Shown here: piece after piece, positions 2,180 to 28,193 of the stretch
Numbering within the stretch: the stretch's first letter is position 1
Layout of the letters: every line of letters begins with the position of its first letter
Source of the DNA: Pelomyxa schiedti
Taxonomy: Eukaryota; Protista; Evosea
Length of the DNA: 39,113 nucleotides
Direction of reading: 5' to 3'
Assembly (NCBI GenBank): GCA_020536535.1
Contig: JAHLWZ010000951.1
Coordinates: 1 to 39,113 of the forward strand
Made by a program: the position numbers and the translations under genes
The notes under the pieces: generated by a model
Seen by the model: only the letters and a program-made list of their open reading frames with translations
Told to the model about the DNA's origin: nothing
Databases searched by the model: none

Positions 2180-5100
2180 ATGTCGGGACAACCAACAGAC
2201 GCCAACGAGGGCGCAACGCCCCCACAGCCCAATGATGCTAATTACCCCAGTCCCAAAGATACAGATCACAGCACCACCATCGCCAAAGAAAAACACCACC
2301 AACAACACGCGGACGACGGTCCCATAAGTAAAAGCAGCAGTCACCATAGCACTCACCACCACGGCCACCACAAGCACAGGTACAAGTACAGGCCCAGTCC
2401 CACACCTCCCATAATCTCCCCTTCGCCGTCGCCCTCCCCATCCCCCTTATTGGCGTCGTCGTCATCATCATCTACACCGGTTCGGACTTCCTTGTTGAAT
2501 TTGCGACGGAGCACCGATGGCGACCGCGACGGCGACGGTCCCATAATGACTAGCGCGATCAGCGGCGATCGCGACGATGGAGTGACAAAGAATGTTGGTG
2601 ATTCTTCTGCAGCGACAATGACAAAAACTGCAACTACTACAACTACTACCACAACGACCACAACAAGTGACAGTGGAACGGCAGGTTTTGCTTGTATAGG
2701 ATAGTGATGGATTTTTTTCATTTTTTCGTTGCTTGGGTGGTGGTTTGTTTGTTGCCAATTGATTGGTTCTAATTGGATGAACACCCAAGGCCAACAGCAA
2801 GAGACTGAGCATGAACAGGTGCAGCTCGAAATGGCAGCTGTTCGAGCAAGAGACGAAATCACCAAACGAGCACTGGAAACGTTTTTGACTACAAGTGGTT
2901 CCTGCAACTGGTTATCATTATTTTTGAAAAATACTTTTCTTAATGGCATTTAGTTCAAGTGTGAAGCCAAAACTAGAAGTGAAAACAGCCAAGAATGACC
3001 CTCTTGAGTCATCAACTGTCTGCTCTGAACCTCCAGTCAGTTCCATCTCGAAGTCCATGCAATCAAGCTGCTCCATGCTTTCTACAAGCCCAGAGCAACA
3101 TGATGAAGATGAGGAAAACGCTTACGATTCGTATACATATGAGTTGCCTGCAGATGCGCCCATTCCCAAAATTGCTTTCTGTGCTTCGGGAGGAGGAATG
3201 CGGGCAATGGTCAGCATGGTTGGGTTTATGGATGGCCTCAGTCAGATCGGTCTACTTGACTGCATAACTTATGTTGTGGCATTGTCTGGGAGTGTGTGGT
3301 GCCCTCTGCAGTGGTTTGCCTGCCCTGGAATTGGCCAAGGGTGGAATCCTTTTCATAGTACAAAAACAAGCGACCCATGGAAGGCGGGTGGTTGCTTTAG
3401 TGAAGAAGAGCACAACTACTCTCTATTAGAGGAGATGGTTGTAAATGGCAGAGAAAAACGAGATACAATTGCTGCATCCTTCCTGGAAGCAGTCATGCCC
3501 GAGTCACTTGGAGTGAAGGGAGGTGCCTTTGATCTTTTAGCAGCATTGCTGCACAAAGATGCCTCAGTTGTCAAGGAATATACATCCTTTCTTGCAAAGA
3601 GATTAGTGTCACACTGTTGTAAAACGAATGCAACGTCTGTGACTTTCAGTGATTGTGCCCCAAAACTTAGTTCTGGTGATTACCCGATCCCAATTATTAC
3701 TGCCATTACAAGTGATTCTGGCGTCAATTATACGGGAGCACTCCCCGAGTGGGCGTGGATTGATATCACACCATTCACTATCAGGAAAGATGGCAAATTC
3801 ATAAAGCCTACACAGGAATTGCAGTTTAACACTGTACCTCAGTTGATGGCAACCTGCGCTGCCGCGTTTGCCTGTGACTGGGATTATGTACTTCCAACAG
3901 TTCAAGGTGCCCTTCCTAACATCGTTCAACGCCTTGTGCTTCCAACTGATGCCTGGTGCGATCAAAGACAACCAGCTGCTGAGTTCATATTTAAAGAAAC
4001 GGCCGGGTATGATTCTGACATTGGGCATATGAGAGATGCGGGAATAGATGTAAATGTACCATTCAATGCTTTGAGAGGAAGACACGTTGATATCGCCATC
4101 GTCATGGAATCCTCCAAATCTGCAAGGGGTTGCGAGTGTCTTGTGGCCGCAGTCAAAAAGGGATATGTATCTGTGTGCAAACAGGATGAACCTCTTCTTA
4201 CTGCCCCCTTTGGGCAAAATCAGTGCTTCAGGGTGTTCCACCCAGAAAAGCCTGGTGATCCTCTGATAATCTATGTAAGGGGCCACACACTTATAAGCTC
4301 TGTGTATCTAGACTTCACAAGCGATGAAATGCACGGCATTGTGGATTCTGTGAGAAGAATGGTTGTTCAAGAAGCTGAAAACTTCCGCTGGGTTATTCGC
4401 AACTGGGTTGGTAGAGCAGCATCAACAAAAATTTTACACTCTGTTGCTCAAGTTGTGAGCCCTCCTATTCACAACAAGCTTAAAGAGTTTTTCCGAGGCA
4501 AGTACAGTAGATTGTCCTTGCTTGGCAGTACGAGCCGGTGCTTTTCTGACCTGTTTGTCAAAGTGAATCTAGCCCACGAAACAGTGCACGGAAGAGATAC
4601 ATGTGTGAGTTTAAATGACCTTTGGGAAATTGCATTCCGCAACGGCAAACGACGATGCATTATTGAAGCTTCAGCGGGCTTTGGAAAGTCCACTTTGGCT
4701 AAATATCTAGCAAGAAACCAAGGGGAAAAAGGATGGAGCAAACATTTTGGAGTAGTTATAACTCTGGAGCTGCAACACATTGATCCTTCTCACCCTCCCC
4801 AAACTCAACATGAAGCTTTACATGATGTAGTGGGTATAACAGATCCAGAGCTATTGGAGTATATTGAGAAAGATATGTGTAGTGATGAAATTCTATGGAT
4901 ATTTGATAGCTTTGATGAAGTGGAGCGTGTTCCTGCACATCTCCCTCTTCGGAAGTGGCTTGACAAACTCATACAAGGAAATCTTGGGTGGGCATCTAGC
5001 ACCCTAATAATGAGTAGAAAAGAAAGAGATGCTGTATTTGATGATGCTCTTCACACTGACCTGGAAGAGTGGGGTGATGAAGATGTTGAGAGGTATATAA

Positions 5101-8054
5101 ACAAGTTTTTCAAAGATAAACCAGAAGCGGATAGGGTAAACACCTTAGCCCTCCTCAGGGTTAATCCAAGTATAAGAGCTTTTGCCAGAACCCCGCTGGT
5201 TTGTGAACTACTCTGCACAGTTCAACACATGCTTACAGAACCCAACCTGACCTTGAAGATGCTGTTGGATACACTCGTTACATGGCTGTGGGATAGAGCC
5301 AATGACAAAAGATTGAAGGCGGGGCTGGCTTCTTTCACTAAACAACAAATTGAAGAAGTGTCTTCAAGGTTAATGCAATTTGCTCTGGACTCCTATCGTG
5401 GTTCTGGCAATATTTTTGAACTGGATGTCAACGATCCTATGGAGAGCACAATCTACAACAGTGGGATTGTGCGGCAATTCGCAAATCCCAGAGAGGTAAA
5501 TAGAGCACCTTGTAAAAAGAAATGTGAGTTCATACATAGAATGCTCCTAGAGTATTATACAGCTCGCGCCGTGTGGATTAATATGCAATCCCACAGGCAG
5601 TTGATTCAAGGTTTAGTCCATCTGAACCCTGATGAAAGATTGATGTTTGTCATCTTGGCTGGATTTGCCAAGGAGGGGAATTGGAATGAACTCTTCTCTG
5701 AAGTGCTTTCAATGCTTTCCGATAAGTTATCCCAGAGACTTGTAGAATTTGAGAGACAAATGCAACATGAAGGGAAATGGTACAGCACTCGAGAGAAGTG
5801 GAGAAACAACCTCGGTGTAAACATTGTTATTGAGATGGCCACAATTATTGGTGATACTGCAACAGAAAAGTTTATTTGTTCTCTATCACCTATGGCAGCC
5901 AAGGTAACTTAACTCCAGTCATCATTCTCTAACAAAGCTAAGTTGGGATCTGTGATTGAGTACATTCCCCTTGTGAGTCGTTGGGTAGCAAAACCATCAA
6001 CACGCTATGCCTTTGCCCCATGGATATTCAGGATCCTTGTAGAGCCAGCAGCACGATATGGAAATATCTACCTGCTTTCGCACCTTATTTCACGGGCAGG
6101 AGGGCACACCGAACTTGATCAAGGCCTTTTAGAAGCATACCTCTCCAGACAACATGCAGTTATTGAACTCCTTGTAAGCCAAGGTGCTGGAAGGCTATCT
6201 GCTGAGATCCCGGCCAGACTGGGCCATGTGGAAGGAACAAAAAAGATGCTCATTGAAGCAGACTACAAAGACTCCGTCATGACCAAAGTTATGATTGCTG
6301 CCCTATCACGGGATCAAGTGCATGTCATCGAGCTGCTAGTGATGCATATGGACCTCACTGTCCTTTTAATGCACGCTTTGGTTTACCGTGCCAAGTCGTG
6401 CATACAGAGTCTCAGTTCCAGGATTACAAAAATCAACCTCAGTAATTCCACCAGGACCTTCCCTTCAGATATGGTTATGGTGATGCTCAGAGCGTGCCCT
6501 AATATGGTGTCCCTAAATTTAAGCAACTGCAATGTCACAGAATACTGCATCCTGCAGATTGCGGCGAATTGCCCCCGGCTCACATCACTTCAACTAGCCT
6601 GGTGCATCAACACCACTGATGCCTGCGTGACATCCATTTGCCAGCACTGCACAAACCTCAACGTGCTGAACCTGTCATACTGCCAGAGGGTCAGCGACCA
6701 CTCCACGCTCAGGATACCGCGGTCCCTCCCCAACCTCTGCGTCCTAGACATATCCGGCTGCATCAGGGTCACTGACAAGACGCTGCTCAAGATAGGCCAG
6801 TCATACTCCCACACCGGGCAAGTCGCCGGGCCCCCCTCTATCCTCTCGTGCATCGACCTGTCCGGCCTCCCGCTGATCACCGACGAGGGCGTGTCCGTGC
6901 TGGCGCTGGGGGCCGCCGCGAAGCTCGCGGCCGTGGGGCTGGCCAACTGCGCGAGGCTCACCGAGGCCAGCGTGGTGGCGCTGGCGGACAAGTGCGGGGC
7001 CTCGCTGACCTCGCTCAACCTGGACGGCAGCGCCGCCGCGGCGACCGACCGGGCGCTGCAGCACGTCGCCTCGTGGTGCACGGCGCTGCAGCACCTGTAC
7101 GCGTCGTCGTGCGAGCGGCTGTCGGACGACGGCGTGCTGGCGCTGGCGCGGAGCCCCGCGTGCGCGCCGCGGCTCGAGTCGCTGCACCTCGCGGACTGCC
7201 CCGGGGTCACCGAGAAGTCGGTGGCGGCGCTGGCGCACTCGTGCGCGGCGCTCGCGGACCTGGACGTGTGCGGGTGCCAGGGGCTGACGGACGAGGGGGC
7301 GTCGCGGCTGAGCTCGGCGCCGCTGCGGGCGCTCACGCTGAGGTGGTGCACGCTGGTGACGGACGTGACGCTGGGGTGCCTGTCGGCGGCGCGGCCGGCC
7401 GAGACCCTGCAGAGCCTGGACCTGTCGTACTGCGTGCGCGTGAGCGACCGCGGCGTCGCGTTCGTCGCGGCGGGCTGCCCGCGGCTCGCGCGGCTCAAGC
7501 TCAAGGCGTGCCACAGGGTGACCGACGCGGGGCTCGCGGCCCTGGCCCGCGGCGCCTGCGCCGGCAGCCTCTCGCGCCTGTGCCTCGGCGGCTGCCCCTC
7601 CGTGACCGACGCTGGCGTCGCCGACCTCCTCTCGCTGTGCTTCAAGCAGTTCCGCAGCACCCCAGCTGAATCGTCCACACCATTATCTGAATCCTCGCAA
7701 GTAGTGACAGAACACTCACAACAAACACCAACACCAGCAGCTTCTTCAACAGCGGTGGCATTATCAGGATCCACAACATTAGCAACAAGCGCATCACCTC
7801 AAATGGAACCAGCCAGTGATGCGGCTGCAGTGCAGCAGTTGGGTTCCTCCTCTTCGTTGTCTTCTTCATTGGTGGCATCCTCATCCTCTGCACTAAGGGC
7901 AACAACACAGGAGTGGTACCCTTACAACCCTGATGCTGTTAGTTACAAGGACAAGAACAGGCCCGTTCTGGACCTGCGGCAGTGTGTTGGTGTCACAAAG
8001 TCGTTGTTGTCAAGGACTGCAGAGACACACCCAGGTGTTAGAGTGAAGTTATAG
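2180..8054 (+). CDS. NLR-like protein: cPLA2/lysophospholipase - NACHT - ankyrin-like - Cys-containing LRR; predicted exons 2180-2684, 2790-2910, 2954-5903, 5943-8054 (1895 aa if spliced this way)
   Basis: PLA2: 'IAFCASGGGMRAM' (3171), 'YVVALSGSVW' (Ser at 3285), 'MRDAGIDVNVPF' (Asp at 4035), 'RHVDIAIVME'. NACHT: Walker A 'IIEASAGFGKSTLAK' (about 4662-4700), Walker B 'ILWIFDSFDE' (4890-4919), 'RTPLVCELL', 'EFIHRMLLEYY'. ANK-like: 'AARYGNIYLLSHLI', 'HAVIELLVSQGA', 'ARLGHVEG'. LRR: repeated LxxLxLxxCxxhTD units. The four exons sum to 5688 nt in one frame. Confidence 0.8.
3165..4390 (+). other. Cytosolic phospholipase A2 / phospholipase B-type catalytic domain (approximate limits)
   Basis: GGG-R oxyanion loop, xLSGS nucleophile motif and catalytic DxG motif appear in the order known for cPLA2 (SGGGFRAM...GLSGS...DSG). 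Confidence 0.85.
4490..5580 (+). other. NACHT-type STAND NTPase with helical/winged-helix motifs (approximate limits)
   Basis: Pre-NACHT 'FSDLFVKVNL', P-loop GFGKST, Walker B hhhhDxhDE, sensor 'TLIMSR', 'TPL' helical motif and FxH...EY winged-helix motif. Confidence 0.85.
6400..7650 (+). repeat. Cys-containing leucine-rich repeat array (FBXL/AMN1-like, about 26-aa units)
   Basis: Examples: 'CPRLTSLQLAWCINTTD', 'CTNLNVLNLSYCQRVSD', 'LESLHLADCPGVTE', 'LQSLDLSYCVRVSD', 'CPRLARLKLKACHRVTD'. Confidence 0.9.
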
Positions 8055-8131: not shown

Positions 8132-9361
8132 TTACAAAAAGAGAGGCTTTGTTGCTCTGCCGAGCCTGTCCACAATTGCAGCCCAAAGCCCGTCTGAATG
8201 GTCTGGCATAAGCACTAGTATTAGAGGTTTTCCGCCTTCATCTACATCTCTGAGGCATGCATAGAGCTTGTGTGCATAATCCCGTGCTTCTGAAGGCATT
8301 AAGGTGGTTTCGTGTGGTGGAGGTAGGTACATGTGAGGAGAGTATGTTATAAGTGATATGGAGAGGTGTGGGTGTGTCGGTTTCAGTGCTTTTATAGTGT
8401 CTTCAGCCGGTTGGCATATTCTGTGCTCGCTACTGGAGCTACTACTACTGGTACTACTGTCGCTCCACGAAGCACACCAGGTTAGAACATCACTCCACTG
8501 AGCTTCCGAAAATCTAAATGCCGGTGTACGGGGAGCGTAATGGCTGTCGAGCATTCCAGGGCTCGGTCTGGGGGCGTCTTCAGGAGTCGGTTTCGGGGCA
8601 GAGTGGAGAGGAACCACTCGAACTCCCAAACACTCTGACATCATCTCTGCTGTAACAGCTCCAGGTCTCAATACAACGGGGGGATTACGAGTCACGTCAA
8701 CGACAGTTGATTCTACACCAACATCACACTCCCCACCATCCAAGATGGAAACCAGTCCAGCCGGTCCTGCACCACTGAGCTCCGCCATGACATGTGCTGC
8801 ACTGGTTGGTGAAGTAAATCCGGAACGGTTGGCAGATGGAGCAGCAATAGGCCTCTTGGACGCCTCGATTAAACGTCGAGCAATAGGATGTGAAGGTACA
8901 CGTATGGCAACAGAAGGAAGACCGGCTGAAACACAGGCAGGAATCAAAGCTTGATTTCTAGGAACAACGACAGTCAGCGGACCAGGCCAAAACCGTGCCG
9001 CAAGCTTTTCCGCCTCCACAGGCAATACACCCCCACTAGCACACGTTCTCGCCATTTCCACGTCTGTAACGTGAACTATCAACGGATTGTTGGAGGGTCT
9101 TCCCTTCGCAATGTATATACTTTGCACAGCGGTCGCATTCGTGGCGTCGGCACCTACGAATACTAAGTATACTGCACAACGGGAAAAGAGAAAAAAAAGG
9201 AAAAAAAAAACCGTGGATCGCGAACCTAAACCGTACACCGTTTCAGTAGGAAACGCGACTAGTTTTCCATCACGTATGACTTGACCGGCCTCAGACAAAA
9301 TCTGCTGCGTATCGCTGTCGCTTCCCCGCAAGCAATCTCGCACCGTGACAATCGCCGACAT
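8132..9361 (-). CDS. SUA5: Threonylcarbamoyl-AMP synthase Sua5 (YrdC plus SUA5 domains); exons 9361-9226 and 9153-8132
   Basis: 'LVAFPTETVYGLG|ADA...AKGRPSNNPLIVHV', 'FWPGPLT', 'IAAPSANRSG..SPT', 'GVESTVVD', 'PGM..SHYAP'. The 'SRSTVFFFLFFLF...' stretch is a 72-nt in-frame GT-AG intron (9154-9225). Confidence 0.95.
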   Translation of the reverse strand: MSAIVTVRDCLRGSDSDTQQILSEAGQVIRDGKLVAFPTETVYGLGSRSTVFFFLFFLFSRCAVYLVFVGADATNATAVQSIYIAKGRPSNNPLIVHVTDVEMARTCASGGVLPVEAEKLAARFWPGPLTVVVPRNQALIPACVSAGLPSVAIRVPSHPIARRLIEASKRPIAAPSANRSGFTSPTSAAHVMAELSGAGPAGLVSILDGGECDVGVESTVVDVTRNPPVVLRPGAVTAEMMSECLGVRVVPLHSAPKPTPEDAPRPSPGMLDSHYAPRTPAFRFSEAQWSDVLTWCASWSDSSTSSSSSSSEHRICQPAEDTIKALKPTHPHLSISLITYSPHMYLPPPHETTLMPSEARDYAHKLYACLRDVDEGGKPLILVLMPDHSDGLWAAIVDRLGRATKPLFL

Positions 9362-9577: not shown

Positions 9578-12500
9578 TTACAGATAAAAGGCTAATATGT
9601 TGTGCCTATCAAACAAGTCTTTGACTGCTGGGAGTGCACTGGGAACCCAGTTGGTGTGCGCAAGTCGCCGCTTGTAGCCCTCAATAGTGAAGCCCTTTTT
9701 GTCCAAAACCTGTGTAGGATCACAGTTTTATTTGTTAGCCATTCTTGGAGGTGAAAGTGAAGTGAAGTGCAGAAAGAATTCAGGATTGGAATGGAGAAGT
9801 TACCACGTTGGCGATTTCGCTGTAAGGGACAACCCACTGGCATGATGCCTTGCCCCCGTGATGCCGCTGAATCAGAACCACGTGGGTTGTTGTAAGAATG
9901 AGAGAAAGCTGCTGGGAGCCTGATGTATCACAAGACACCCTCTCCACAAAGACCAAACCCTGTAAGTAGTGAGAACTAGGCCATGGGAAGGAGCGTATCA
10001 AGTAGGAAGGATAAAGGAAGGAAGAGGGGGACGGGGGCATACTTTGCCGGCAAAGCTCAACAAAAATTGCCCAAGGGTGTCATTGGCTGGGGTGTTGTAC
10101 GGCGAAGCACTGGAGGCTGTATTTTTGGCTGTGCTGAGTGGGAGGGGGGTGGATTGTGCTCGGGGAGAGGAACCCGGCTGCGGGCGGGGTGGTTTGGTGG
10201 GTGGGGATGTTGGCTGGTGGGCCACAGAAGCCGAAACTGGAAGGGGTGTGTGTGGCGGGGGCAGTGAGGGTGTGGAGGCGGTCTTGACTTGCTGTGGGAG
10301 GACCGCCAGGGGAGGCGGGGGAGGCAGGTCCGATGTGGAATGTGTTTTGATGGTGCCGAATGCGGAGGGATAAAGTTGGAGTGGGGGTGACTGTACATGT
10401 GGTAGGAGTATCTGGGGTTGCGGTTGCATCAACAGCGGTGGCTGGGTCTGCGGCTGTAGGGACGGTGATGGGGACGGAGGTGGGGACGGGGAAGGGCCAA
10501 GAGGGGACAGACCCGGGGTCGAGGGTGGGGAAACTCGTATCGCGAGAGGAGACTGTTCTAATGTGGGTGAAGTTGGTGTTAAAACAGGGGATGAGAGCGC
10601 GGATGAGGAACGTAAAGGTGCAGATTGCACTCTCGACAATGCCAAGTTGGATGAAGAGGTTGCCAGTATTTGGCTGTGCAATAGTCCACTGAATGGGTTC
10701 GGAGTACCTGGAGACTTCTTTCGGGAGACTCTGCGTGCGGAATTGGCAGTGCTAGACACACCACCATTGACTCCTTGGGCTGTTCCTGCCGCAAGATCAA
10801 GTAATCCAGCAGCAGGTTTTGTTACTAAGCCGATAGTTCCGCCGACCATGCCACCAAGCAGCCCAAGGGCACCATGTTCTTGAAATCCTCGCATTGGCTG
10901 TGTGACAACGCCAGTGAATCCGCTTTGCACACCAAGTTTAAGAGCATGTCCTCCCTTCGCTAGGCCATCGACAACACTAGTTGGCTTAGTAAGCATCACT
11001 TTCTGGTGCTCAGCGATATCTTGATTTCATTAACGCTAAAATTGGAAACGTCACAGCTCACAATCCTTATCCCTGGTTGCCGCGCCTAGCTGAGAACCAG
11101 CCCAGGAAGACAATGAGCCTGTAAATCCCACAAGACCTGAAACAGAGTGCTGTGCCATACTTAAAGCACCTTTGCCAAGACCAATTCCAAACCGTGTTTT
11201 ACTCACTGCTGCACCTTCATAAGACTCATAACTACAGTCAAGTTAGTTTGTTGTTCGTTGTATCGTTTATTTGTGGGAGCAAACAAGAGGTCCATGACGC
11301 CAGTTTTAAGGTTTCGGAATAAGAGCATAGGATTTCCAATGATTTCAGAGCTTCCAAAAAGAACCAGAAGTTGCTTATTTGCTTGGCTGGTGTAATGGCT
11401 AAAACATCTCTGAGCGAGATCCCCCCACTCCAAGAAGACATCTTAAGAAAAATGTCAGACGTACATATGATTTGGATGAAAGACCTTCAACAACAAGTTC
11501 AGAGAAATGTATGGGAGCACGTACAATGTTTCCCATTACAATTCCAGTGATTCTTAAGAGTCGATTGTTATCATTTGCTGCATGCGGATCGTCATTTCTT
11601 TGAGAAGGTGAGAAGGGAAAAAGGTTTAAAGAGTATCAAAGTACACACTTTATCAGCAATGGTGTGAAAGAAACATTAATGAAGAGTGGATTAAGGAATA
11701 GCAGCTTCACATATGCATGCCTCGTTTCAGAGGAGTTGTTGTTCTGGACGAGATTAACCAACTATTAGCATTTTGCAAGTCATACTATGGTTGGGGTAGT
11801 GGGAGGGCTTTCCCCCATGGCTGCTTTAACCTCCTTGGAAATGAAATCACTTATCCCAAGGATTCTGTGTAATGTATCCCCTGAGCTCTCATTAGGAAAT
11901 AGATGACTGATGGAAAAAAGAAACCTGTTACTTCAATCTCAATTTCTTGAACAAGTAAATCCAGAATTTCAAAAAAGTCAATGGTTTTATTCTCCAAAGA
12001 TCTTATTGTAGATAAATGAAGAGCTGGTTTTCCAGTATGATCCCTTGTTGTGTACAGCATAACGGGGTATAGTTCATCGATCTATAAGAATGAGAACGTG
12101 CGTAAAGCTTTCCTCACTTACTTGATTATCCAACTGTATTTCATATATATTGAAAACTAGAGAGTCCCGAAGATTAGATCTGGAATACTGAAAGTCTATA
12201 TCACTCAAGGTGAGATACAGAAATTCAGTTGATGTTATTTCAACCCTTTGTGAGATTAATTGTGAAATTGATGAGTGTCGTTATACAATGAAATGCCAAG
12301 GGACACATTTGCTAGCTCGATGCATAATGTTGTCTCACCTTCCCGTTTTTGGCTTGTTGCTGTTGCTGGATCATCACAATCCCACACCTAATGAGAGCGA
12401 AATCAGTCTCATGAAAAACAATAGAAGGAGACCTTGATGATGCGGGTTGGACCACAAGCTTCCACACTCAAAACCATGCAGTTGGGAATTGTAGTTAACC

Positions 12501-15500
12501 CAAGTTTGAGTATATCAACAGGATGTGAGGAAACAGCCAATGTACGGCTTTGGTCGGGCAAATCTGGGTTTTTCATTTTAAGAAAAAGCTGTGTAAAGAA
12601 CTTCGAATACCCCAGGCAAAATCAACATAATGACTGGGAGGTACAGTTTGTACTAAGGGGCAATTACCCTGTCCCACAAGAATTGGAGTGGAACGATAAT
12701 TTTCAATCAAAAACTGTGGAACAGCAAGTGGGTAAACTTTGACAACAGTAGCCTTGCCCTTTAATGTGATATGCTGATAATTCTTAGTGAAATTGTAAAA
12801 CAAGAAATACAGTACAATTGAAACAAAGTAATAGTCCCCAATGCTATTTTTGAGTCTTACTGAAAATTCATCTAAACTATCGACTGGAATAAACCCAGTG
12901 CATTTAAAATCATCCACTACAATCTTCAAAAAGTTAGTTATCTGAAACACCAATCAGCATTGAAAACCTGAAATTTTGAGTTGGCACAGTAAAGAGGAAC
13001 AACTGCTCCAGGTTCCACTGAGCCATAGGTGCTTCCAATCATTGTGTATTTCAAAGTAACAGGGAGAGCGTTCGATAAATGTAATGCAGATGACAAGGTA
13101 ACAACTTTTACGTCACCATAAGCAGGAGCGGCAGTGATACTAACGACGATATTGTAGACCTCATTGAGAGAATCACCAGGTACAGAGACTACACCACTTG
13201 CCCCTATTGTGTTTATAGGAATTGGTCTACTCTGTCTTCTGTATCCTGCGAGTTGTAGGTTTGCACTCTCCCACCCAACGGCGGGAAACAGTATAGGCTT
13301 AGACTCAGTCACTGCAATACAGAATTCGCCCCCAATATTCCTTGGATTTGGCGTGAGGCCCAGAAATAAACCTGTGGTGTTGAACAGCCAGAATGGACAA
13401 GATATAGTTGCTCGCCACACAGCACTTTTTATTTTCTGCAATGCCAAGGGAAGAGAAAGAGAACCAAGAGTAATACTAGGTGGGCAATCTACAGATTCCT
13501 TTCCATGCTTTGGAGCCGTGAATGGGTCAATACGCATGAAAGAAAGGTACAAACTTTATCAAAACTTCGAGTGAATACAGGGATAAACGGGCTCCACTCA
13601 TTACATTCTGATCTTATCTGATAATCAATGAAATGGATGGAAAGGCAAAAATCATTTGTCATTCCTGTGGAGATTAGTCCTATATTAGGTGTTATGAAAT
13701 AGAAACCTAGATGTACGGGGGCACTATGCCCAGGCTCAACAATACCATCAGCAACCACACACCCGTGCTCTGCTACTCGAAATTCAAACGTGTAGGGGAG
13801 TTCATTCATTATCTGAAAGGCAGCACTTACAGTAAACTGTAAAACGTCCTCAGTTTGAACTTTTGAGGTAAAATCTTCATCGCCACTGTCGTCCTTCCAC
13901 AATGCAAAGACCACTGGTCGACTGCCAACCTCCCCATAGGATGCAACAGGAACACTCCAAGAAGCCTTTATGTTGGACAGCATGAATCCGCTGGAGTATT
14001 TATAGCCAAACCCTGCAGGCCGGATAAAGCAAACACACATTTCAGGAAACATCACAGGTAGATAGCAAATTTCTCCTGGAGGCAGTGTTTCAGTAACAGA
14101 TTGCCCAGATTGGTGTTTGAACATCAAATCGAGAGGCATTATACATGAATTACGTACACGTACTTGTGAATGAAGTGAAACAACTTTTACACCGTTTTCA
14201 CAAGTAATTTCAACAATAAGTGTGCACTTGCTAGTATTAGTAACATTCGTGAGGGAAAATGTGTGCTTCCGTGCACGGGAGAGATTGATAAGTGATGTCT
14301 GAGAACAAGATCCAACTTGGAAGGATGTCTTCATTGGTGCACCACTGTCATTGTCAAGTTCCAAAACGGCTCTTGGCTCTAAAGAGAAAGTGTCTTGTTG
14401 TATCTGAAAAACTACAGTATGGCCACTGTGATTTACAATGCGGTAGGGCTTGGTTATAGTCCCACTTGGGATGCTTAATTTTTTTACAAAACTGTCATAA
14501 TCAGATGCCCAGACATTTAGCAAGGCTTTAACGGTAGCTATGAATTGTACACTTGCTGTAAGTTCTATTTTCTTTTGTGGGAGTAGAGAAAGAAGGGCAT
14601 GAGGACAGTAGTTCAGCGAAGCATTACACTGGAACGGTTGAACCAATGACTCCCAGGCAGACAATAATTCGTTGTAGAATTGTGCCTGTAAGCAGAATTC
14701 AAGCATATTTTGGGTGAAGTTATTGATACAGTTGAGTTTCGTTTCGGTAAAAGAAATTTCTACTACTGGCCTGGAAAGGGCGTTTCTGTTGTTGACTAGG
14801 GCAACACTAACTTGAGAACATTTGATGCTCACATTGACAGTAATCCCTTCACCAAAATATTTTGTAGTCATTGAAGCGCCTTTAGAATACTGTACTGGTA
14901 GAAGTTGGGGACCGGTGTGCTGACCAGATGGTACAATTCGTTTTGGAGAATGATCAGTAAGAGTGATTGTGGGCTGGCTTGAATCCATCCCACTTCCCCA
15001 CATTTGTTTATTTTTGCTAAATTGTAGTACCACAATGGCGGCGATCCTTAAGTCAAAGTATGAAACCACTGAAACAATGTTGCTTGAGCTGAAGTCCAAA
15101 TCAATTTTATTATTTTGGAGTGCACAGGTGAAAATCAGGTCACAAGGGCACAGTATAGATGTCTTTTTTGAAGATTTCGTTTCAGTTGTAGATGAAGAAA
15201 ACACCTCTAAGCCACCGATGTAAAAATTGGCTCTTGCCTGCTGTGAGGAAAGGGATGATAATTCGGCGTTGAATTGGGAGAGCTGCAATGTTACAGTGGC
15301 TGAGGTGGGCTTATTGACATCTTCAACAATTACAATCAAAGGGTTGTGAAGGGCACATTCGAATTGAATGGAATAGTTTGGAAGATAAGATGTAAGAGTT
15401 TTCTGGGAGGTTTTCTTGTTCACCTTGGAATGCTTGGCCGCAGGGTCCACAACGGGCTTCGGTAAACCCGAAGTACTTGAATCAGTTGGGGCCGCAGTTG

Positions 15501-18500
15501 GCATAAAAAAATCTGAAATTGCTAGAATAAGGTGTGGCAGTAGGATTAATCGTGGTTGTATCAGTTTTAGGGATGCCTTCTTGCCTCCTGTCACGGAACT
15601 ACAATATTCAGCAGACACCAAAGGTTCTGTGCTTTCACTTGCAGTAGCTACCAGCTGCTTGAAATTACTTGGCTGACTTTGCTGTGTTTCGTCTTCAATA
15701 GTTATTGAACTCAGGGATACTTTTGTAACGAGAGCTTGCTCTGATGCAGCGCCTGGGGTTGTTTCAATCATAGGGAAGTCTGTTGATGCTATGGAAGCGA
15801 CAAGATTGGAGAGAGTACAGTGTGCAACATCTTCTAAGCGTACAACCAATCGCTGCAACAGGAGAGCACAGCACCATTTGTCAGTATTGACAAAAGCAGA
15901 AGATGTGGGTTTAATCTTTGCCTCTGGCTCTCTTGGCAATACTGATGATGGTGGTTTAGGGGGTGGAGAAGGGTTTTGTGAGAAAAGACTTGTACAGATC
16001 GATAGTAGAAGTTCGTATTCCAATTTGGAAAAGCTCACACTTATGACAGGTATAGAAGCACTCACATTAAGGTAAGGTAATCGCTCAAGGGTGAGTTCGA
16101 TGTCGATGTTTCCAATAATTTGTTTGTAAGGAGAACTTCCATCTAGAAGTAAACTCAGATCCGAATCGCGAAACCATAAACTGAGCTTTCCATGTGCTAC
16201 ACCTTCTGTGTCCTTACTGTCCTTTATAATGCAAGTACCAATGTTGCATTTAACTTCGCTTCTATTCTGCTTGTTGTCCCGAAAGATGATCTGTGGGCCT
16301 GTAAGTACTGCATCGACACATAACCGCCTAGGAGCTGTTATCACTGTTTCTATGGCCTTTTCAGCAGTTGCTTGAGCAAAACTTGTTAGAAGTGATAACT
16401 CTGCTGCGTAGGCTTTCATGTCCGAAAAGAAAGAGGGGACATAGATGGCAGAAGACTTTTCTGTTCTGACTGTAAGGCCTATCAAATCAGGATTCATTGC
16501 TACTTGTAGTTGGCATGCGCCACCTTTCCCAAATGACAGAATATTTTCATGTGTTTCAGTATTAGTGATTGTTACAGATTCCAAATTGGAAGTCTGGTGG
16601 AATGTCAGAGGAAAACGAAAACTAAAACGGGTACCAATTCAGTTGAAGAGGTATTGGAATTGTAGTCTAAGCCAACCATGCCTTTCTCCAATTTGGCTAC
16701 GGCGAATTTCTTTCCGCCAGACACCTATTTTTAAAGTTGGTAAAATGCCAGAAAAAACCTTGAGGCTACCAGAGTTAGAGTCAAACATCTAAGAAGCACT
16801 TCACAATGGTACTTGCTGTTCACTGGAGCAACAGAACCCGGAGGTGAGAGTGCCAGCCAGGTCTCTGAGTCTGGATTGAAGTACCTGAATAGTTCGACAA
16901 ATGTGTTTTGATTAAAGCTTCCCCACATTGTATGGAAGTTGATTATTAGACCCTGTGATAAGACAAGATCAGAACCAAGCTCCCTGCTGTATGTCAGAGA
17001 AACACTATCCGTTGGGCAGCAGTTTTTATCGCAACTTTCCTCAAGGAGCAAGGTGCTTTCAGATGTGCCTTGGGGAGAACAACTCCCTAAAGTACTTGGA
17101 AGTTTGTCCATGCCTTTGTATGTCAACAATGTGCGGAAATCCGGTCCATAGGGTTGCATAGTATCCACTACATGCAGCCCCTTAATATCAGATTTGATGA
17201 CATAACAAGGTCCGCGTTGCGTAATAATAACTCCAAATTCCAGCATATCCAAAATAGCAAATGGAGAGTGTGCATTATACGATGTGAGCTGGAGAGAAAG
17301 ATTTCTGAATGAAAACGAGTACACCCGCCAATTGACATGCAAGTCTTGTGGTAAAGGTGAGGGAGGCAGTTTATATTCATCAAAGTTTTCAAATAGTATC
17401 CCAATAAAAAGGTTATACTGAGCTTGAGAAAATGACATCTTGACGGTTTTAGTTGAGGCAAAAAATTAAAAGATTCCTACTAAAACTGGCGGGATGTCGA
17501 TAGTAAGGTCAATTTCTGGGTGAAGTTTTTCAAAACTCCACAGCGGTCTTTTGTAGTGGCAGGTAATAGAAACTACGAAAGGTTTGATTGTGTTCAAAGA
17601 AAGAAGAAAGAAACCTGCGTCAGTAAGCTTGTATGGTATACAAGTGCCCTCTTTGAAATGATTGGAAGTTAAGCTTTGCAGATCAACATCAATTCTCATA
17701 TCGTCGATTTCTGAAAGAAAACTGGGAAGGTTTAGTGAAAACATTCATCATAATAAATTAATAAAGTATCTTGAATGGTGAATACCTATTAGAGACCACG
17801 ACTTTTTCTATTTTCCCAACAAAGGAATCTTTGCTTCGAGAATTTCGAGGAACCAAGAAAGTAATGTTATACCCAAGAATTTCAAGCTTCAGTTTGGAAT
17901 CCTTGGGCAGAAGAACATTGTGCAGCTGATTTATGACGATGGCACGCATCTCCTGGAAATTACTTATATAACAAAGCAGCTGCTGTACAAATCGAAACAA
18001 GAATTCAATATGTGCAGAAGTAATTTCAATATGAATCAAGGTATCATAGCCAGGATAATTGCGTGCCCATTTGGAAAATAGTCCAACATTGAAGGTGACG
18101 GGCTTGTTTGTCAGAGTGGTGAGGGCATCTTTGTGCAAAGTGCCATCTACTGTCAGATCAGAAACCGTAATAGACCCAAGAGATCCTGTTGCGGCTACAG
18201 TACGTTTGTGAATATTGACGCAAGTGTCTACATTTGAAACAGAAAACTGAGCCAGCACTTCTCCATCTTTATTCAATTGCAAATTGAGGTGGTTGAAAAT
18301 TACACTGACGCGAAGCAGAGGTGATTCCTTAGGTGGAGAAGATTGAGGGGCAGGAGCAACATCTGGAGTCACCCCAAAGTCAAAAAATCGCATTAACTGT
18401 GCCACTGTGGGGAGATTCACAACTACAAACAGGGAATTTGCCACCACCTGTAGTATTTCAACAAGGTCTCTCAAGACTTTTTTTTTTTTTACCTCAACAC

Positions 18501-21500
18501 TGAGGGGCCCATTTCCACCAGCAGACACAGTAAGATTAATCAATTTTTCTGATCCAGAGGATACAAGAAGAGGGTTTTTGCACATTACCCAGTGATCTGT
18601 CACATTTAGTGATTGCACCCCAAGCTGTGCTTGTTGCCTGTAGCAGTGATGGGTGTCTTAGTAATTTACTGTTAGTCTGGGAATAAGAGAAACTATGCTC
18701 TAGGGCAAGTTACATGTGGCATGGATCCCTTTTGTGGTAACGTCAACCAACGGTCGTTTATCAATAAATAAATGAGCCGCAATGTTGCGCAAATCGAATT
18801 CCAGTGATAATAAAAACGGATCATGTGATAGCATATCTTCTCTTTCAACAATGTCTAGACCTCTTGCACCACCAGAAGGGATTGGAATAGAATGGATGTC
18901 CTCTATTTGAGGCAATTGCTTATTCATGTGCTCTTTCAGTATCTCCTTCAAGGAAGATAAAGCAGCATCGCTCATGGAGATATGGATATCCTCAATTTGC
19001 CCTTGAATTTGAATCTTTGGGTGAATCGAATCTGTTGGGAGTAGATACTGCGAAAGAGCGAGTTCAACGGTGAAAGGAGGGACAATGCATTGAACATTGG
19101 AAAGTTGACTGTGCCAGTTATTTGAGGTATGTCCTGGAAGGAGAAGTGTGTGTAAATTGCTTGCTGTTACTAGGTAGTGATCATAGTGTTCAAATGTTGG
19201 AGAATCACAGGAAGGCTCCATAACACCGTCCAGTTTACTCTAAGAGGATTCATGGAAATAAAGGTTATTAATGGAAATACAGATTAGCAACGATTTACCC
19301 TCACGTTCAATCTCCCTAGATCAAGAAGGAGCATTGGAGTGCCAGGCAAATTATTTTTTGGGATGACAACAAGAGGAGAATGCAAATCAACGTCAAAATC
19401 AATCTGCTAAGAGTTGAGAGGCAGTAAACGAATGTTTCAACAACCCTGATGCGATTTTCTGCCACCTGAGCCCAGTTAATGCTGGTGTTCTCAGTTACCC
19501 AGTTGTTAATATCACCATTGATTTCATTGGTCATTATAGATGTTGGGGTCTGGAAGAAATTGGAAACCTATGGCTGTTAGTCTAAACAGGACGTTGATGG
19601 GAAAAGGGAGCTACTCTTCGAATAAATGATGGTGAGACAAAAATCTCCAAAGGGAGAAGACGCATTGTTACAGCAAGGTCCGCACGTTTGTCAGCCGAGG
19701 TTTTAATATTCATACAAAATGTTGTTGGTGCTGTCATGGTTGGGGGACTGGGCATGATGAGAGGTTGTGAGGGGGAACTTAGAGACTGCTCCTCAGACGT
19801 TTGCTGGTGATATTCTTGAGAGTTGGAAGTTGTTTGATTTGTGTCCACAACACCCAGATTTTGCTGGTACAACTCATATGGGGGAATTGTGCGCAATGAA
19901 ACCACATTCCTAAAGAGTTCCCCATTGTTTTCAGCTTTTTCATCACAGATTTTTACTCCTCCAACCTTGAAATCAACCTCAAATTTTCCTTGTTTCCTTC
20001 TCCAATCAATACTAGACTGTGAAACCTCAAGTGTTGAGACTGCACTGCCTGGGGCTTCCATCAATGACACACACAAAGTATGCACAAGTAAGCTTGCATG
20101 GAGTTTTACAGTACTCATTAATATTGTCTCTATCTGCTCTCCCTGGTATCCAAAGGCGCGCAATAGCTCCTGTTTTTGTTCTTCAGTAAGTGGAACAGGT
20201 GCATTTGTGTCCTCTACAGGAGCCACTGGTTGGGTTACGGTAGTGCTACCTCCCCACCATGAAGAAAACCATCCACCCTGCTTTTGTGGAGGAGGGGGAG
20301 GTGAAGGTTGTTTCAGTGGAATATGCGCCTTTCTTGCTTGCAACACAGTTAAGGACCGAAAGTAAATAATGTCTTCAAAAGCGAGTTGCTTTTGTATCTC
20401 ATTTACGAAAGTGGTGTCTTCTGCAGTTTCCTTCCAGAATTAAAAAAAAAAATACATAGATGATAATACTCACTTTTCCAGCAAGAATTTTGGCATATGC
20501 TTGAGTGTATTTGATGCGGTTGTCCCTACGTTGTGCTATTTGTGCCCATTTGTAAGGAAGTTTCCTCTTTTTAACATCATTCAATACTGAGTTCATGGCA
20601 TACTTCAACCATGCTCTGGGATTAGCTGATACTGAAACCACTGGTCTACCTTTCTACCAAGTATTATTAGGTGGTTGTCTTTTCAGGTAGTACCTTCATT
20701 AAGTTCTTTTGGATAGCATGAAGGTTAGTTGCGACTTCCAGGATATTCAGGTATTGTAATCTATTCAAGTACAACACAATGCGGTCGAATCCAATATGAA
20801 CACTGTACTTTGGTGGAACGGACTGTCCGGGTACTGAGGTTCCGTTGTTAATTGTTACTTGCATTGTACCGGAAATGGGCTCAAGGATAAATGTGTGACT
20901 GGATGTAGCAGGATCAACCTTTGAAATAAACTAAGTCTTTTCCTTTATCAAGGATAAAATACAGTACCAAACGAGACATCTCAGAGCAAAACGCTTCAGC
21001 TGTCGATGTGGTAACATAGTCCGTATTGTTGTCACAGTAGACGGAAAAGTTATGTAGAGAAACAAGCTTGTGAAGTTTATCTTGTGGGAAGAGTGTGGAA
21101 AATATGTACTTTATAGACACAGTCACCAGAGTCATTGACATACATAGGTTGCCATTGGGAATTTGTTGTTTCTAGTAATATAAGCATTCTTTCAAATGTC
21201 AGTAGTACCTGCTGAAATGTGTTGGATGGTTATGCCAAGAGCAAATCTGTCTGTTTCTGACGTGGCTGCCTCAAATCTGGGATAAATTGTGGATGTGATG
21301 ATACATAAAATGTGGTACCTCAAATGAATGTTGGAGAGCTTAATCTGCATATTTGCCAGTACCTTGGTGAACACCCGTTGACTAAATGATGTCTGCTGAC
21401 TTGCGTCATCTTAGCAAAGGTAAGGTTTTAATAGTTAAAGATACGATACCAGTGGTGGGCTTCTTTGAATGTGATGCCTCATATAGAGCTACCTTGTCCA

Positions 21501-25944: not shown

Positions 25945-28193
25945 TTACTCTGATGTGGAGAGTTTTTGTAGTCTCCTCTTTCTTATTTCCTCTGGTGATG
26001 CCGGAGGGCTATTGCTACTGTTGCTGGCAGAATCTGCTGTTGATATTGGTGTGGGTTTTGCTGTTGATGTTGATGTTGATGTGGATGAAGTGCTGGGTGT
26101 TGCAGTGTAGGCTGTTGGTGTTGTAGTTGTTGTGGCAGTGGTTGCGGCTGGTGGTTGTGGTTGTGATTGCGATTGTGGTGTATTTGGTTGTCTGGGCTGA
26201 GCCGGAGTAGTTGTTGCAGAGCTGAGAAGGGCCGCGTTCAGCTCCCAGGCTTGGGAAATTTGTGCTTGTAGGGCTGCCTGCTGCTGCATCAGGCTGTCTA
26301 ATTGCCACTGAAGACGCATTTGCAGTTCATAAGGGCTCTCCGTGGGGTGTGTGGCTGGTGCTGTGGTTGTTGTTGTTGTTGATGCTGGTGCTGCCGCTGA
26401 TGCGGATGCGGATGCGGATGCGGATGCAGCTGAAGTATGACTTGGTGTTGTGGAAGTTTGTGGCTGACCTGCTGATTGCCACTCGGGTGGGGTTGGTGGT
26501 TGAGGCTGTACATGAGGGAGATGGGGTTGTGGCGCTGGCTGATTGGCTTGTGGGATGTGGGGTTGTGGTGCTGGTATATTTACAGCAGGGGCATATCCAT
26601 TCTGGGGCATGAATTGGGGTACCCAAAAGCCGGCTGCTTGTGGAACCATGAATGGGATTGCACCCATTTGGAATTGCATGTACTGTGGGTGTGGCATATG
26701 CGGCGGGAAAACAGGTCTCTGGCAAATTGGACAGTTTTGTGACTGTGCAAGCCAGGCCCTGAGACAGTGAAGATGCAGAATATCTTTTTTTTTGTGTTAA
26801 AGATTATTATAAATACACTTTGCGTACGGTTGCAGGGAAGACGTTTGCCAACAACCATATCCTCGCGGCACACAATGCATGTTGGATCTGCATTGGGGAA
26901 ATTGGCAAGAGCCACAGTTTCCAGCCTGTTTGTTTGTTGTTAGCTGTATCTAGAGGGAAATAGTGAAATACATTCTGTCCATGATTGCAGTTGCCCTGAG
27001 GTAGCGTGTTAGCTCGGAACAACGTTTCCTGAATGAACTACAAGCCATCCACACTTGTCTTACCAAGTATATGGGCAAACCTTTATCGGAATAAACAAGG
27101 TATAACCAGGGAGGCTAAAGCAAAACCGTGGAACTGGTAAACGATCAAGAAAAAGAGTGTATAAGTAACCATAGTGAACCCTGTCTTTTGGTTTGTGTTG
27201 GTTTGTTTGCTACAGGAGTATTGGAAAGGTTTTGGCACCTGAATGACAGCCAGATATAAGAGATATTTGGCCTTGTTGTCCCAATTACCCTCCATCCTGA
27301 CATCAATGCAGTTGAATATGAATTTGGAGATGGTGCATAGGATCATCACTGACAGTAATGTGAACTAGAGAAAGATTAGGGTACAGTTTGGGACTGCACA
27401 TGGCAAACCTCAAAACCAAACAATATCATTGTAGAGGGGCCGTTAAGCCAGCAATGTTTCCAGGAATAGAGTGCCAAAGCACAGTCGACTGTAGTCAGCA
27501 ACAACATAAGGACCACAATCCTCACATTATCCAGTATTGATGTGAGGGGGACTTGTTGTAACTTTGTCCGTAAGCAAATATTTTGAGAAAGAAGACTTAC
27601 GAAGTCAACTCTATCTTCAAGAATCCAATGAAAGATCTTGATGAATAAAAGCATAACGAAGGCACCAACAAGGGTGGCATTGAACTGGTCACCAAATATA
27701 GTCATTGCGAGCAGTGTTTCCATGATGGCGGGCCATAATTTCTCGTACATCACCTAATTGCAGGAGCAATTTATTTGTATTGTCAAACACAATAACACTT
27801 TCTATACCTCATAATCACGCTCTCTTGGCTTCCCAAAGAATATTCTTTTCAGGAGATAACCCAAGAAAATGGAAAACATAAGGACACAATTGCCCAACAC
27901 CTACATTACCAAGGGTTACGAAACGAAACACACTGTTTCATTTTATTCCACTCTCACCATCATTGCAGCCTTGGAACTCGTCAAATAAAGTACTATCTTG
28001 AAATACCTTTTTCAAGTTGGAACAAAGGTGCCAAAAGAAAAACAAAAGAAAAAAAAGGGACAAAAAAACAAACACAAAAAAAGGGGGGGAAACAGAATTA
28101 CCTGTACTGCCATATTTCACACGTGGAGTACAACAACCCAAGAGTCGACGCCACTGTCAACAGCACGTAGTGCCGGAAACTGAATCGAAACAT
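25945..28193 (-). CDS. HRD1: ERAD E3 ubiquitin ligase Hrd1/synoviolin, multi-exon
   Basis: Transmembrane region 'IVLYLTSSK...KRIFFG...YEKLWPAIMETLLAMTIFGDQF...LLFIKIFHWILEDRVDF'. Spliced RING-H2 '[37 protein letters not shown]'. Pro/Gln-rich tail ending in a VCP-binding-like motif 'EEIRKRRLQKL'. Confidence 0.93.

Follow-up and report, generated by a model that had tools for sequence, protein, structure and literature searches.

A cPLA2-type lipase, a NACHT module, and two kinds of C-terminal repeats in a single gene of the amoeba Pelomyxa schiedti

Gene Structure

A single four-exon gene is located at positions 2180-8054 (+) of a 39,113-nt stretch of the Pelomyxa schiedti genome (contig JAHLWZ010000951.1, assembly GCA_020536535.1), which is referred to here as the window. 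Pelomyxa schiedti belongs to the Archamoebae, within Amoebozoa. The gene was delimited from its reading frames and from protein mapping, and it encodes a STAND/NLR-type protein. This protein consists of a low-complexity N-terminus, a cPLA2-type lipase, a NACHT module, about four ankyrin-like (ANK-like) repeats, and 15+1 Cys-containing leucine-rich repeats (LRRs) of the FBXL type. The gene is intact and selectively constrained. An effector-NTPase-repeat architecture in one gene of a unicellular eukaryote was the core of the original prediction for this locus, and all four domain types were recovered by profile or fold searches. An exhaustive HMMER protein search identified the gene as GenBank KAH3743955.1, a protein of 1758 aa that carries the name “leucine Rich Repeat family protein.”

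There are four open segments on the forward strand. These are 2180-2704, which is of low complexity and rich in His, Ser, Pro, and Thr, approximately 2790-2910, 2943-5912 (989 codons), and 5943-8054 (703 codons). When joined as exons 2180-2684, 2790-2910, 2954-5903, and 5943-8054, they give a model of 1895 codons (1895 aa) with no internal stops. KAH3743955.1 was mapped onto the window and its three GT..AG introns were identical to those of the 1895-aa model, with a start at ATG 2546. Gene models for this genome were made with Augustus, PASA, and EVM and were fed by single-cell transcriptomes, according to the genome paper (PMC8887013).

Exon 1 (2180-2684) encodes the low-complexity N-terminus and has no Pfam matches. 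Its frame is open from ATG 2180, and a stop lies just 5' of that ATG. A single-cell assembly (X4) contains an in-frame insertion of 9 nt, AACACCACC, at window position 2291 in this His/Thr-rich exon. The frame is kept, and this length polymorphism is upstream of the GenBank start codon. Intron 1 (2685-2789; 105 nt, GT..AG, phase 1) joins SGTAG to QQQETE, as in KAH3743955.1. Exon 2 (2790-2910), which is also included in KAH3743955.1, encodes a short helical segment that precedes the lipase domain. It is similar to the residues directly before the lipase domain in a paralogue on contig C820 and in P0001, a relative from GCA_040384225.1. Intron 2 (2911-2953; 43 nt, GT..AG, phase 2) was taken from the mapping of KAH3743955.1. 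Exon 3 (2954-5903), within the open frame 2943-5912, encodes the cPLA2-like lipase, the NACHT, and the NACHT-associated helical domains. Exon 4 (5943-8054) encodes the ANK-like repeats, the LRR array, a disordered insert, and a terminal LRR, and ends with a TAG stop. The AlphaFold2 (AF2) model of the exon 4 product has a predicted local distance difference test score (pLDDT) of 76.

Continuity Across Intron 3

Intron 3 (5904-5942) is 39 nt in length, has GT..AG boundaries, is in phase 0, and contains an in-frame TAA at 5910-5912. Its splicing was accepted because it is supported by the GenBank model, by the paralogues, and by a transcript from Mastigella. Each of the five other lipase-NACHT genes in this genome is one open frame (1370-1672 codons) without a break at the site of this intron. 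In these five paralogues, the NACHT-associated helices continue directly into the EPAARYGN/ANK-like segment. P0001 is likewise continuous at this site. The closest relative of the window gene is P0009, the product of a Trinity transcript from Mastigella eilhardi (EukProt). P0009, with PTIAKIGGIVEAVPLLGRW, and the window protein, in which PMAAK is joined to LGSVIEYIPLVSRW, align residue for residue over the junction with nothing replacing the 39 nt. The lipase, NACHT, ANK-like, and LRR parts of P0009 are all carried on one mRNA. The expectation that the PLA2, NACHT, and LRR parts are joined in one protein was thus borne out by the Mastigella orthologue.

It is very unlikely that the join is an annotation artefact and that the TAA at 5910-5912 is a real stop. 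If it were, the locus would hold a lipase-NACHT protein together with a separate ANK-LRR gene, or a pseudogene. The 39 nt are a multiple of three, and 5904-5942 is not spanned by any P. schiedti RNA contig. One RNA run (X1) holds the locus, and none of its contigs crosses any of the introns. It provides three short contigs, at 3284-3573, 6654-7028, and 7694-7907, which are all exonic, and an RNA library of that kind can contain DNA. These points speak against the spliced model. An artefact is difficult to reconcile with the canonical GT..AG boundaries, with the continuity of the five paralogues and P0001, and with the Mastigella mRNA, in which the 13 codons have no counterpart. Downstream of intron 3, the frame opens on a codon other than ATG, and an ATG start is missing from its 5' end. 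In addition, 2 of the 39 bases differ between assemblies, a variant density above that of the exons.

An alternative genetic code in which TAA is read as a sense codon was rejected because the paralogue frames, over their 1370-1672 codons, are entirely free of stops. These frames, on contigs C682, C231, C820, and C387, are also free of introns. The genome average is 7.43 introns per gene, as given in PMC8887013. The intron poverty of the paralogues could point to retroposition or to a recent spread of the family.

Lipase Domain

The cPLA2-type lipase (PLA2_B, patatin superfamily) is located at 3138-4442 (+) and was identified through a family profile, an AF2 model, and Foldseek. Three motifs can be recognized. 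The GGGxR motif, SGGGMR (3186-3203), would supply the oxyanion hole and the phosphate-binding Arg. The putative nucleophile is the Ser in ALSGS (3279-3293), a GxSGS motif, and the putative catalytic Asp is in RDAG (4032-4043), a motif of the DxG type. The Pfam PLA2_B match is above the cut-off, with an expect value (E) of 1e-8, and is limited to positions 1-52 of the hidden Markov model (HMM). A profile of eight family members matched human cPLA2 alpha (1CJY) with E 2e-23. This alignment takes in GGGxR/GLSGS and the Ser228 and Asp549 regions.

The AF2 model of the lipase, built from an alignment of 40 homologues, has a pLDDT of 85 and a predicted template modelling score (pTM) of 0.88. The best ten Foldseek matches in the PDB were all cPLA2 alpha or delta (E 3e-16 to 2e-12), with template modelling (TM) scores of 0.5-0.6 by query and a sequence identity of 13-18%. 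They were followed by VipD, PlpD, CapV, CapE, patatin, ExoU, and iPLA2 beta. The 40 homologues were drawn from several eukaryotic supergroups. Every one of the 40 has both the nucleophile Ser and the catalytic Asp, and at least 90% retain GGGxR. Thus, the GGG-R, ALSGS Ser, and RDAG Asp that had been read from the translation belong to a domain that both profile and fold searches place with cPLA2. Judged by these motifs, the active site is complete.

It is improbable that the lipase is not the output of the protein. In that case, the domain would be catalytically silent in vivo, or it would serve as a lipid-binding sensor or membrane anchor, and the output would come from partners recruited by an oligomer. 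The short reach of the Pfam match, which covers just the first 50 or so HMM positions in the window copy, is in keeping with such a role. The domain is also about 150 residues shorter than the catalytic domain of cPLA2 alpha, and its cap regions are of low confidence in the AF2 model. The fold match to cPLA2 is strong over the whole domain, which argues against this possibility, as does the retention of Ser, Asp, and GGGxR among the homologues. Moreover, the N-terminal position of the lipase is the position of the effector in the animal and fungal NLRs that were compared, according to PMC6040629 and PMC10197012.

NACHT Module

The NACHT NTPase core is located at 4650-5117 (+). It was found in the genome scan with a Pfam NACHT E of 7e-12, which is above the cut-off, and it could be aligned with NLRC4. 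The Walker A motif, GFGKST (4677-4694), aligns with the P-loop of NLRC4. Walker B, ILWIFDSFDEV (4890-4922), aligns with LLDGYNE of NLRC4. The sensor-1 region contains IMSRKER (5007-5027). The core is followed at 5118-5903 (+) by helical domain 1 (HD1), a winged-helix domain (WHD), and HD2-like helical domains, and the family profile aligns with NLRC4 residues 131-488. A TPL..C motif, TPLVCELLC (5190-5216), was aligned with NLRC4 as well. The WHD His is found in EFIHRMLLEYY (5526-5558) and pairs with the His of FFHKSFQEY in NLRC4.

A profile of 15 family members matched NLRC4 (E 1e-19), NLRP3 (E 4e-17), and NOD2 (E 3e-16) over the nucleotide-binding domain (NBD), HD1, WHD, and part of HD2. When the NACHT region was used as a single sequence, phmmer found nothing in the PDB at E <= 0.001; family profiles alone reach NLRC4 and NLRP3. 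The 15 members all have the Walker A Gly and Lys, the Walker B Asp, and the WHD His. In NACHT-clade STAND NTPases, the winged-helix His contacts ADP. The NACHT NTPase that had been proposed here is therefore upheld by the Pfam match and by the family profile matches to NLRC4 and NLRP3, and the NLR-type nucleotide switch of the protein, WHD His included, is complete.

C-Terminal Repeats

About four degenerate ankyrin-like helical repeats are found at 6015-6425 (+), beginning at the conserved EPAARYGN motif. A profile of this segment and its relatives matched almost solely ankyrin-repeat proteins in the PDB, with E values down to 2e-9. These included ankyrin, Kidins220, NOMPC, and DARPin chains. 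Of the 11 relatives, six match Pfam Ank_2. The window copy is below the threshold (E 0.023, 15.7 bits against a cut-off of 27.3), which counts against an ankyrin assignment. The repeat spacing, by sequence reading, is about 27-29 aa, and the norm for ANK is about 33 aa. Residues 27-158 of the AF2 exon 4 model form stacked helix pairs. The repeats had been described as degenerate from the outset, and “degenerate ANK” is a fair label for 6015-6425.

The 15 Cys-containing LRRs (FBXL/LRR_CC type, about 26 aa each) follow at 6429-7658 (+), corresponding to model residues 163-572. They match Pfam LRR_6 and LRR_4, have the form LxxLxLxxCxxhTD, and make up regular strand-helix units in the AF2 model. 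A Ser/Ala/Thr-rich insert at 7659-7958 (+) is predicted to be disordered, as the pLDDT is below 50 over model residues 573-672 (100 residues). The terminal LRR-like unit (7959-8051, +) contains the motif VLDLRQC and is modelled as strand-helix-strand at residues 675-702. In Foldseek, the best match of the LRR was FBXL2 (E 1.6e-19, 24% identity), followed by FBXL17, and then by RNase inhibitor and the LRRs of NLRP proteins. The FBXL-type array that had been called from the translation is consequently supported by Pfam, by the 15+1 repeats, and by the fold match.

The ranking of FBXL2 and FBXL17 as best structural matches could suggest that the protein serves the ubiquitin system as a substrate adaptor and does not use this LRR to sense a ligand. 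This is most unlikely. Pfam matched no F-box or other E3-linking domain in any part of the protein, and relatives exchange this LRR type for RNI-, LRR_8-, or BspA-type repeats. The LRR is FBXL-like, but the sequence does not appear to be that of an F-box protein.

The distal LRRs contain a patch at 6867-7617 (+) in which GC at third codon positions (GC3) is 98-100%. GC3 is 0.98-1.00 in five consecutive 50-codon bins (about 250 codons), against 0.28-0.68 in the first 1350 codons. It rises to 0.74 and then 0.86 over the 100 codons that precede the patch, so that the 5' edge is graded and the 3' edge is abrupt. Codon positions 1 and 2 are also enriched in GC within the patch, and the repeats there are rich in Ala, Gly, and Arg. 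The patch is spanned by independent assemblies, and one contig from the RNA library crosses its 5' edge. A DNA search of the genome found no copies of it elsewhere, and no such patch is present in the five paralogues. A repeated or imported cassette was rejected, as the patch stands alone in the genome search and the paralogues are without it. Biased gene conversion and a grafted segment are both possibilities for its origin.

Genomic Neighbourhood

The receptor gene lies tail-to-tail with a gene for a Sua5/YrdC threonylcarbamoyl-AMP synthase at 8132-9361 (-). Further on is a multi-exon VPS13 gene at 12938-20346 (-). These neighbours are ordinary housekeeping genes, and nothing points to an immunity island. 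GC is elevated in two stretches of about 1 kb, 10001-11000 (0.57) and 26001-27000 (0.51), on a background of approximately 0.42. GC skew is strongly positive in both of these, at +0.34 and +0.36, respectively.

Family, Distribution, and Selection

At least 12 NACHT loci are present in the P. schiedti genome, and six of these have PLA2_B in the same frame. The six lipase-NACHT copies are the window gene, two tandem copies on C682, and one copy each on C231, C820, and C387. This answers the question of paralogue number that the original prediction had raised. Other NACHT genes were also seen. Contig C185 contains a NACHT-WD40 frame of 1603 codons (L025:1128-5936, -), and contigs C381 and C42 have NACHT-containing frames of approximately 2700-2900 codons. 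The STAND repertoire of P. schiedti is therefore varied beyond the lipase family.

An exhaustive HMMER search of 1.84 billion protein cluster representatives for the domain architecture returned about 17 clusters that span both lipase and NACHT. Four of these are from Pelomyxa, three from Mastigella eilhardi, one from the prokinetoplastid Papus ankaliazontas, and one from GCA_040384225.1, and the rest are metagenomic. One metagenomic member sits on a compact eukaryotic contig by genes for ZPR1, a Nop/Prp31-like protein, a BEACH-domain protein, and myosin. The cPLA2-NACHT-repeat architecture is rare. Its parts are in the same order, effector, NOD, and repeats, in all full-length relatives. The type of C-terminal repeat varies by member and can be FBXL-type, RNI-type, LRR_8, or BspA-type.

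The relatives on C682 (two copies), C231, C820, and C387, together with P0009-P0011 (M. eilhardi), P0015 (Papus ankaliazontas), and P0001, all have C-terminal repeats and a lipase-NACHT-helical core in common, with an identity of 30-54% in the core. In the tree, the window gene pairs with Mastigella P0009 (100/100), and the C820 copy pairs with Mastigella P0010 (93/91). The window copy has the longest FBXL-type LRR array of the family. It differs from its paralogues in having a coding region split by an intron and in being the sole bearer of the GC3 patch. Copies C682a, C682b, and C231 represent a recent expansion within Pelomyxa, both tandem and dispersed.

Variants between independent single-cell assemblies bear on selection. 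Between 3120 and 5900, the ratio of synonymous to non-synonymous variants is 17:1, and over the whole coding sequence it is 19:7. The reading frame is under purifying selection, since sequencing errors would not favour synonymous sites. For C682a, C682b, and C231, the lipase and NACHT have a dN/dS (the ratio of non-synonymous to synonymous substitution rates) of about 0.2-0.3 and are about 80% identical at the amino-acid level, whereas the C-terminal repeats have a dN/dS of 0.5-0.76 and are about 40% identical. The dN/dS of the repeats is below 1 and dS is near saturation, and the contrast is therefore a trend and not positive selection. It can be seen as a trend toward an NLR-like evolutionary pattern in these three copies. 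The repeat module is faster-evolving than the core and exchangeable between members.

Several more distant proteins were also noted. P0022 is a cPLA2-like/NACHT/BspA-type-LRR relative that keeps GLSGG and RDAGID (L029:10001-14128 and L030:1410-5537, from Joint Genome Institute (JGI) metagenomes 3300062177 and 3300062191). It is found on 17 contigs, most of which are at least 10 kb and which reach 120 kb. Two of the contigs were read (90 and 59 kb), and the flanks of P0022 consist of dense short open reading frames without Pfam matches, apart from a weak SET match and a DUF5710 match. Such surroundings resemble a mobile element, such as a giant virus, more closely than they do a cellular genome. 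Two proteins, P0024 (Bodo saltans CUG86623.1, 1038 aa) and P0025, begin with a cPLA2-like domain, after which approximately 500 residues are without a Pfam match. In P0027, P0034-P0036, P0038, and P0042 (1000-1260 aa), the profile match is confined to the cPLA2-like domain. Tails of the kind seen in P0024 and P0025 might conceal a diverged switch or sensor module.

Comparison with Known Systems

The NACHT module is shared with animal NLRs such as NLRC4, NLRP3, and NOD2. It has the same NBD-HD1-WHD(-HD2) order, Walker A and B motifs, and WHD His (E 1e-19 to 1e-16). A C-terminal LRR sensor is also shared, and the LRR model of the window protein matches the LRRs of NLRP proteins as well. Animal NLRs signal through CARD, PYD, and BIR adaptor domains, whereas the window protein has a built-in enzyme. 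The LRRs of animal NLRs are of the RNase-inhibitor type with no ANK between NACHT and LRR, and those of the window protein are of the FBXL/Cys type and are preceded by ANK-like repeats.

The best profile and fold matches of the lipase are human cPLA2 proteins, GIVA alpha (1CJY) and GIVD delta (5IZ5), with which it shares GGGxR, GxSGS, and Dx(G/A). In contrast to these enzymes, the window protein is without a C2 domain, has a shorter catalytic domain and a reduced cap, and is fused to a STAND switch. Identity is 13-18%. Some lipase-only relatives (P0004 and P0023) do possess a C2 domain.

PLP-1 of Neurospora crassa has NB-ARC in place of NACHT and TPR in place of ANK and LRR. What the window protein has in common with PLP-1 and other fungal patatin-NLRs is a Ser-Asp phospholipase of the patatin/cPLA2 superfamily at the N-terminus, fused to a STAND NTPase and to superstructure-forming repeats at the C-terminus. 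PLP-1 is fungal and its lipase is a patatin (PF01734), whereas the window protein is amoebozoan and is PLA2_B, NACHT, and LRR by Pfam. No sequence relation closer than the superfamily was seen, and patatin is well below cPLA2 in the Foldseek ranking. By analogy, the window protein may be PLP-1-like in its mode of working without being a member of the PLP-1 type. NLR-controlled cell death requires the patatin-like phospholipase domain of PLP-1, and the oligomerisation of PLP-1 is backed by experiment (PMC10197012, which summarizes Heller et al. 2018).

CapV and CapE of the cyclic oligonucleotide-based antiphage signalling system (CBASS), and bacterial NACHT/STAND proteins, share the concept of a phospholipase effector that is turned on by assembly in cell-autonomous defence. 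CapV and CapE are among the fold matches, which are weak (E 1e-4 to 1e-2), and the matched structures are ligand-bound filaments. They are separate small patatin-type proteins activated by cyclic nucleotides.

A full-text literature search found no paper describing cPLA2/PLA2_B joined to NACHT, and neither the P. schiedti nor the Mastigamoeba balamuthi genome paper mentions NACHT or phospholipase. The combination, which the original prediction had thought undescribed, was thus not found in the literature searched, and the protein itself is in GenBank under an uninformative name. Choanoflagellates have NACHT+LRR proteins without CARD or Death domains, according to PMC6040629. Lipase-armed NLRs are already known in fungi.

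Possible Function

It is somewhat probable that the protein is an oligomerisation-activated lipase receptor used in defence or in the control of symbionts. The switch, the lipase activity, and the defence role are drawn from animal NLRs, human cPLA2, and the fungal patatin-NLR PLP-1. At rest, an ADP-bound NACHT, held through the winged-helix His, and the C-terminal repeats would keep the protein monomeric and the lipase off its substrate. Binding of a ligand or a modified self-protein by the LRR/ANK sensor would lead to nucleotide exchange and to oligomerisation of the NACHT. The clustered lipase domains would then gain membrane avidity and activity. Hydrolysis of phospholipids could result in cell death, in attack on the vacuole of a pathogen or symbiont, or in lysolipid and fatty-acid signals. 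Intracellular surveillance is plausible because P. schiedti lives with three prokaryotic endosymbionts, as described in PMC10579272.

Some of the evidence does not favour such a receptor. Pfam matched no C2 domain in any exon and no other membrane-targeting domain, and cPLA2 alpha normally depends on both Ca2+ and a C2 domain for its recruitment to membranes. With six copies, this is a small family. NLR repertoires turn over rapidly in animals, plants, and fungi; the 1:1 Mastigella orthologue of the window copy departs from that pattern and would suit a housekeeping gene. The dN/dS below 1 and near-saturated dS of the repeats, given above, also belong here.

In another explanation, the protein would be a regulated lipase of ordinary physiology and not an immune receptor. 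The NACHT and the repeats would determine where or when phospholipids are remodelled, as in the maturation of phagosomes or symbiosomes, in encystment, or in lipid signalling. This is rather unlikely, and it has evidence in its favour. Orthologue pairs have been kept between Pelomyxa and Mastigella (the window gene with P0009, and C820 with P0010), the copies are few, and purifying selection is strong. The gene is located among housekeeping genes (Sua5, VPS13) and not in a variable island. Some animal NACHT proteins have non-immune roles, such as NLRP5 and NLRP14 of the cytoplasmic lattice, which are among the structural and profile matches. A conserved cellular role fits the 1:1 Mastigella orthologue as well as immunity does. 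With so few copies, and with orthologues conserved in pairs, the non-immune explanation stays alive. Arguing against ordinary physiology are C-terminal repeats that change much more quickly than the enzyme core, the recent tandem and dispersed expansion of C682a, C682b, and C231, and the differences in repeat type between members. Fast repeats, recent expansion, and varied repeat types are hallmarks of sensor diversification.

The reading as an oligomerisation-activated receptor can be taken further, although more tentatively. Possibly, the cPLA2-armed NACHT-LRR is an old and thinly scattered class of eukaryotic receptor for immunity or symbiont control in which the receptor is itself the executioner. 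The fast-evolving repeats would sense, the NACHT would oligomerise, and the clustered lipase would lyse host or vacuolar membranes. Such a class would reach across Amoebozoa, Discoba, and other protists, and possibly to a virus-like element. If so, enzyme-effector NLRs of the NACHT-LRR type would exist outside animals and fungi.

Bacteria and fungi are where NLR/STAND receptors that carry their own enzymatic effectors have been studied, and animal NLRs act mostly through adaptor domains. The family described here has a NACHT most similar to that of animal NLRC4 and NLRP3 and an LRR as in animals, with a lipase fused directly to them as in PLP-1. It occurs in a prokinetoplastid and in free-living anaerobic amoebae with prokaryotic endosymbionts. 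For mutation in heterologous hosts, the evident targets are the catalytic Ser, the Walker A Lys, and the WHD His. If the proposed function is correct, the family would be a tractable example of cell-autonomous immunity or symbiont control in protists. It would also provide a cPLA2-type lipase that is regulated without a C2 domain or Ca2+, and a data point on the origin of the NACHT-LRR architecture outside animals.

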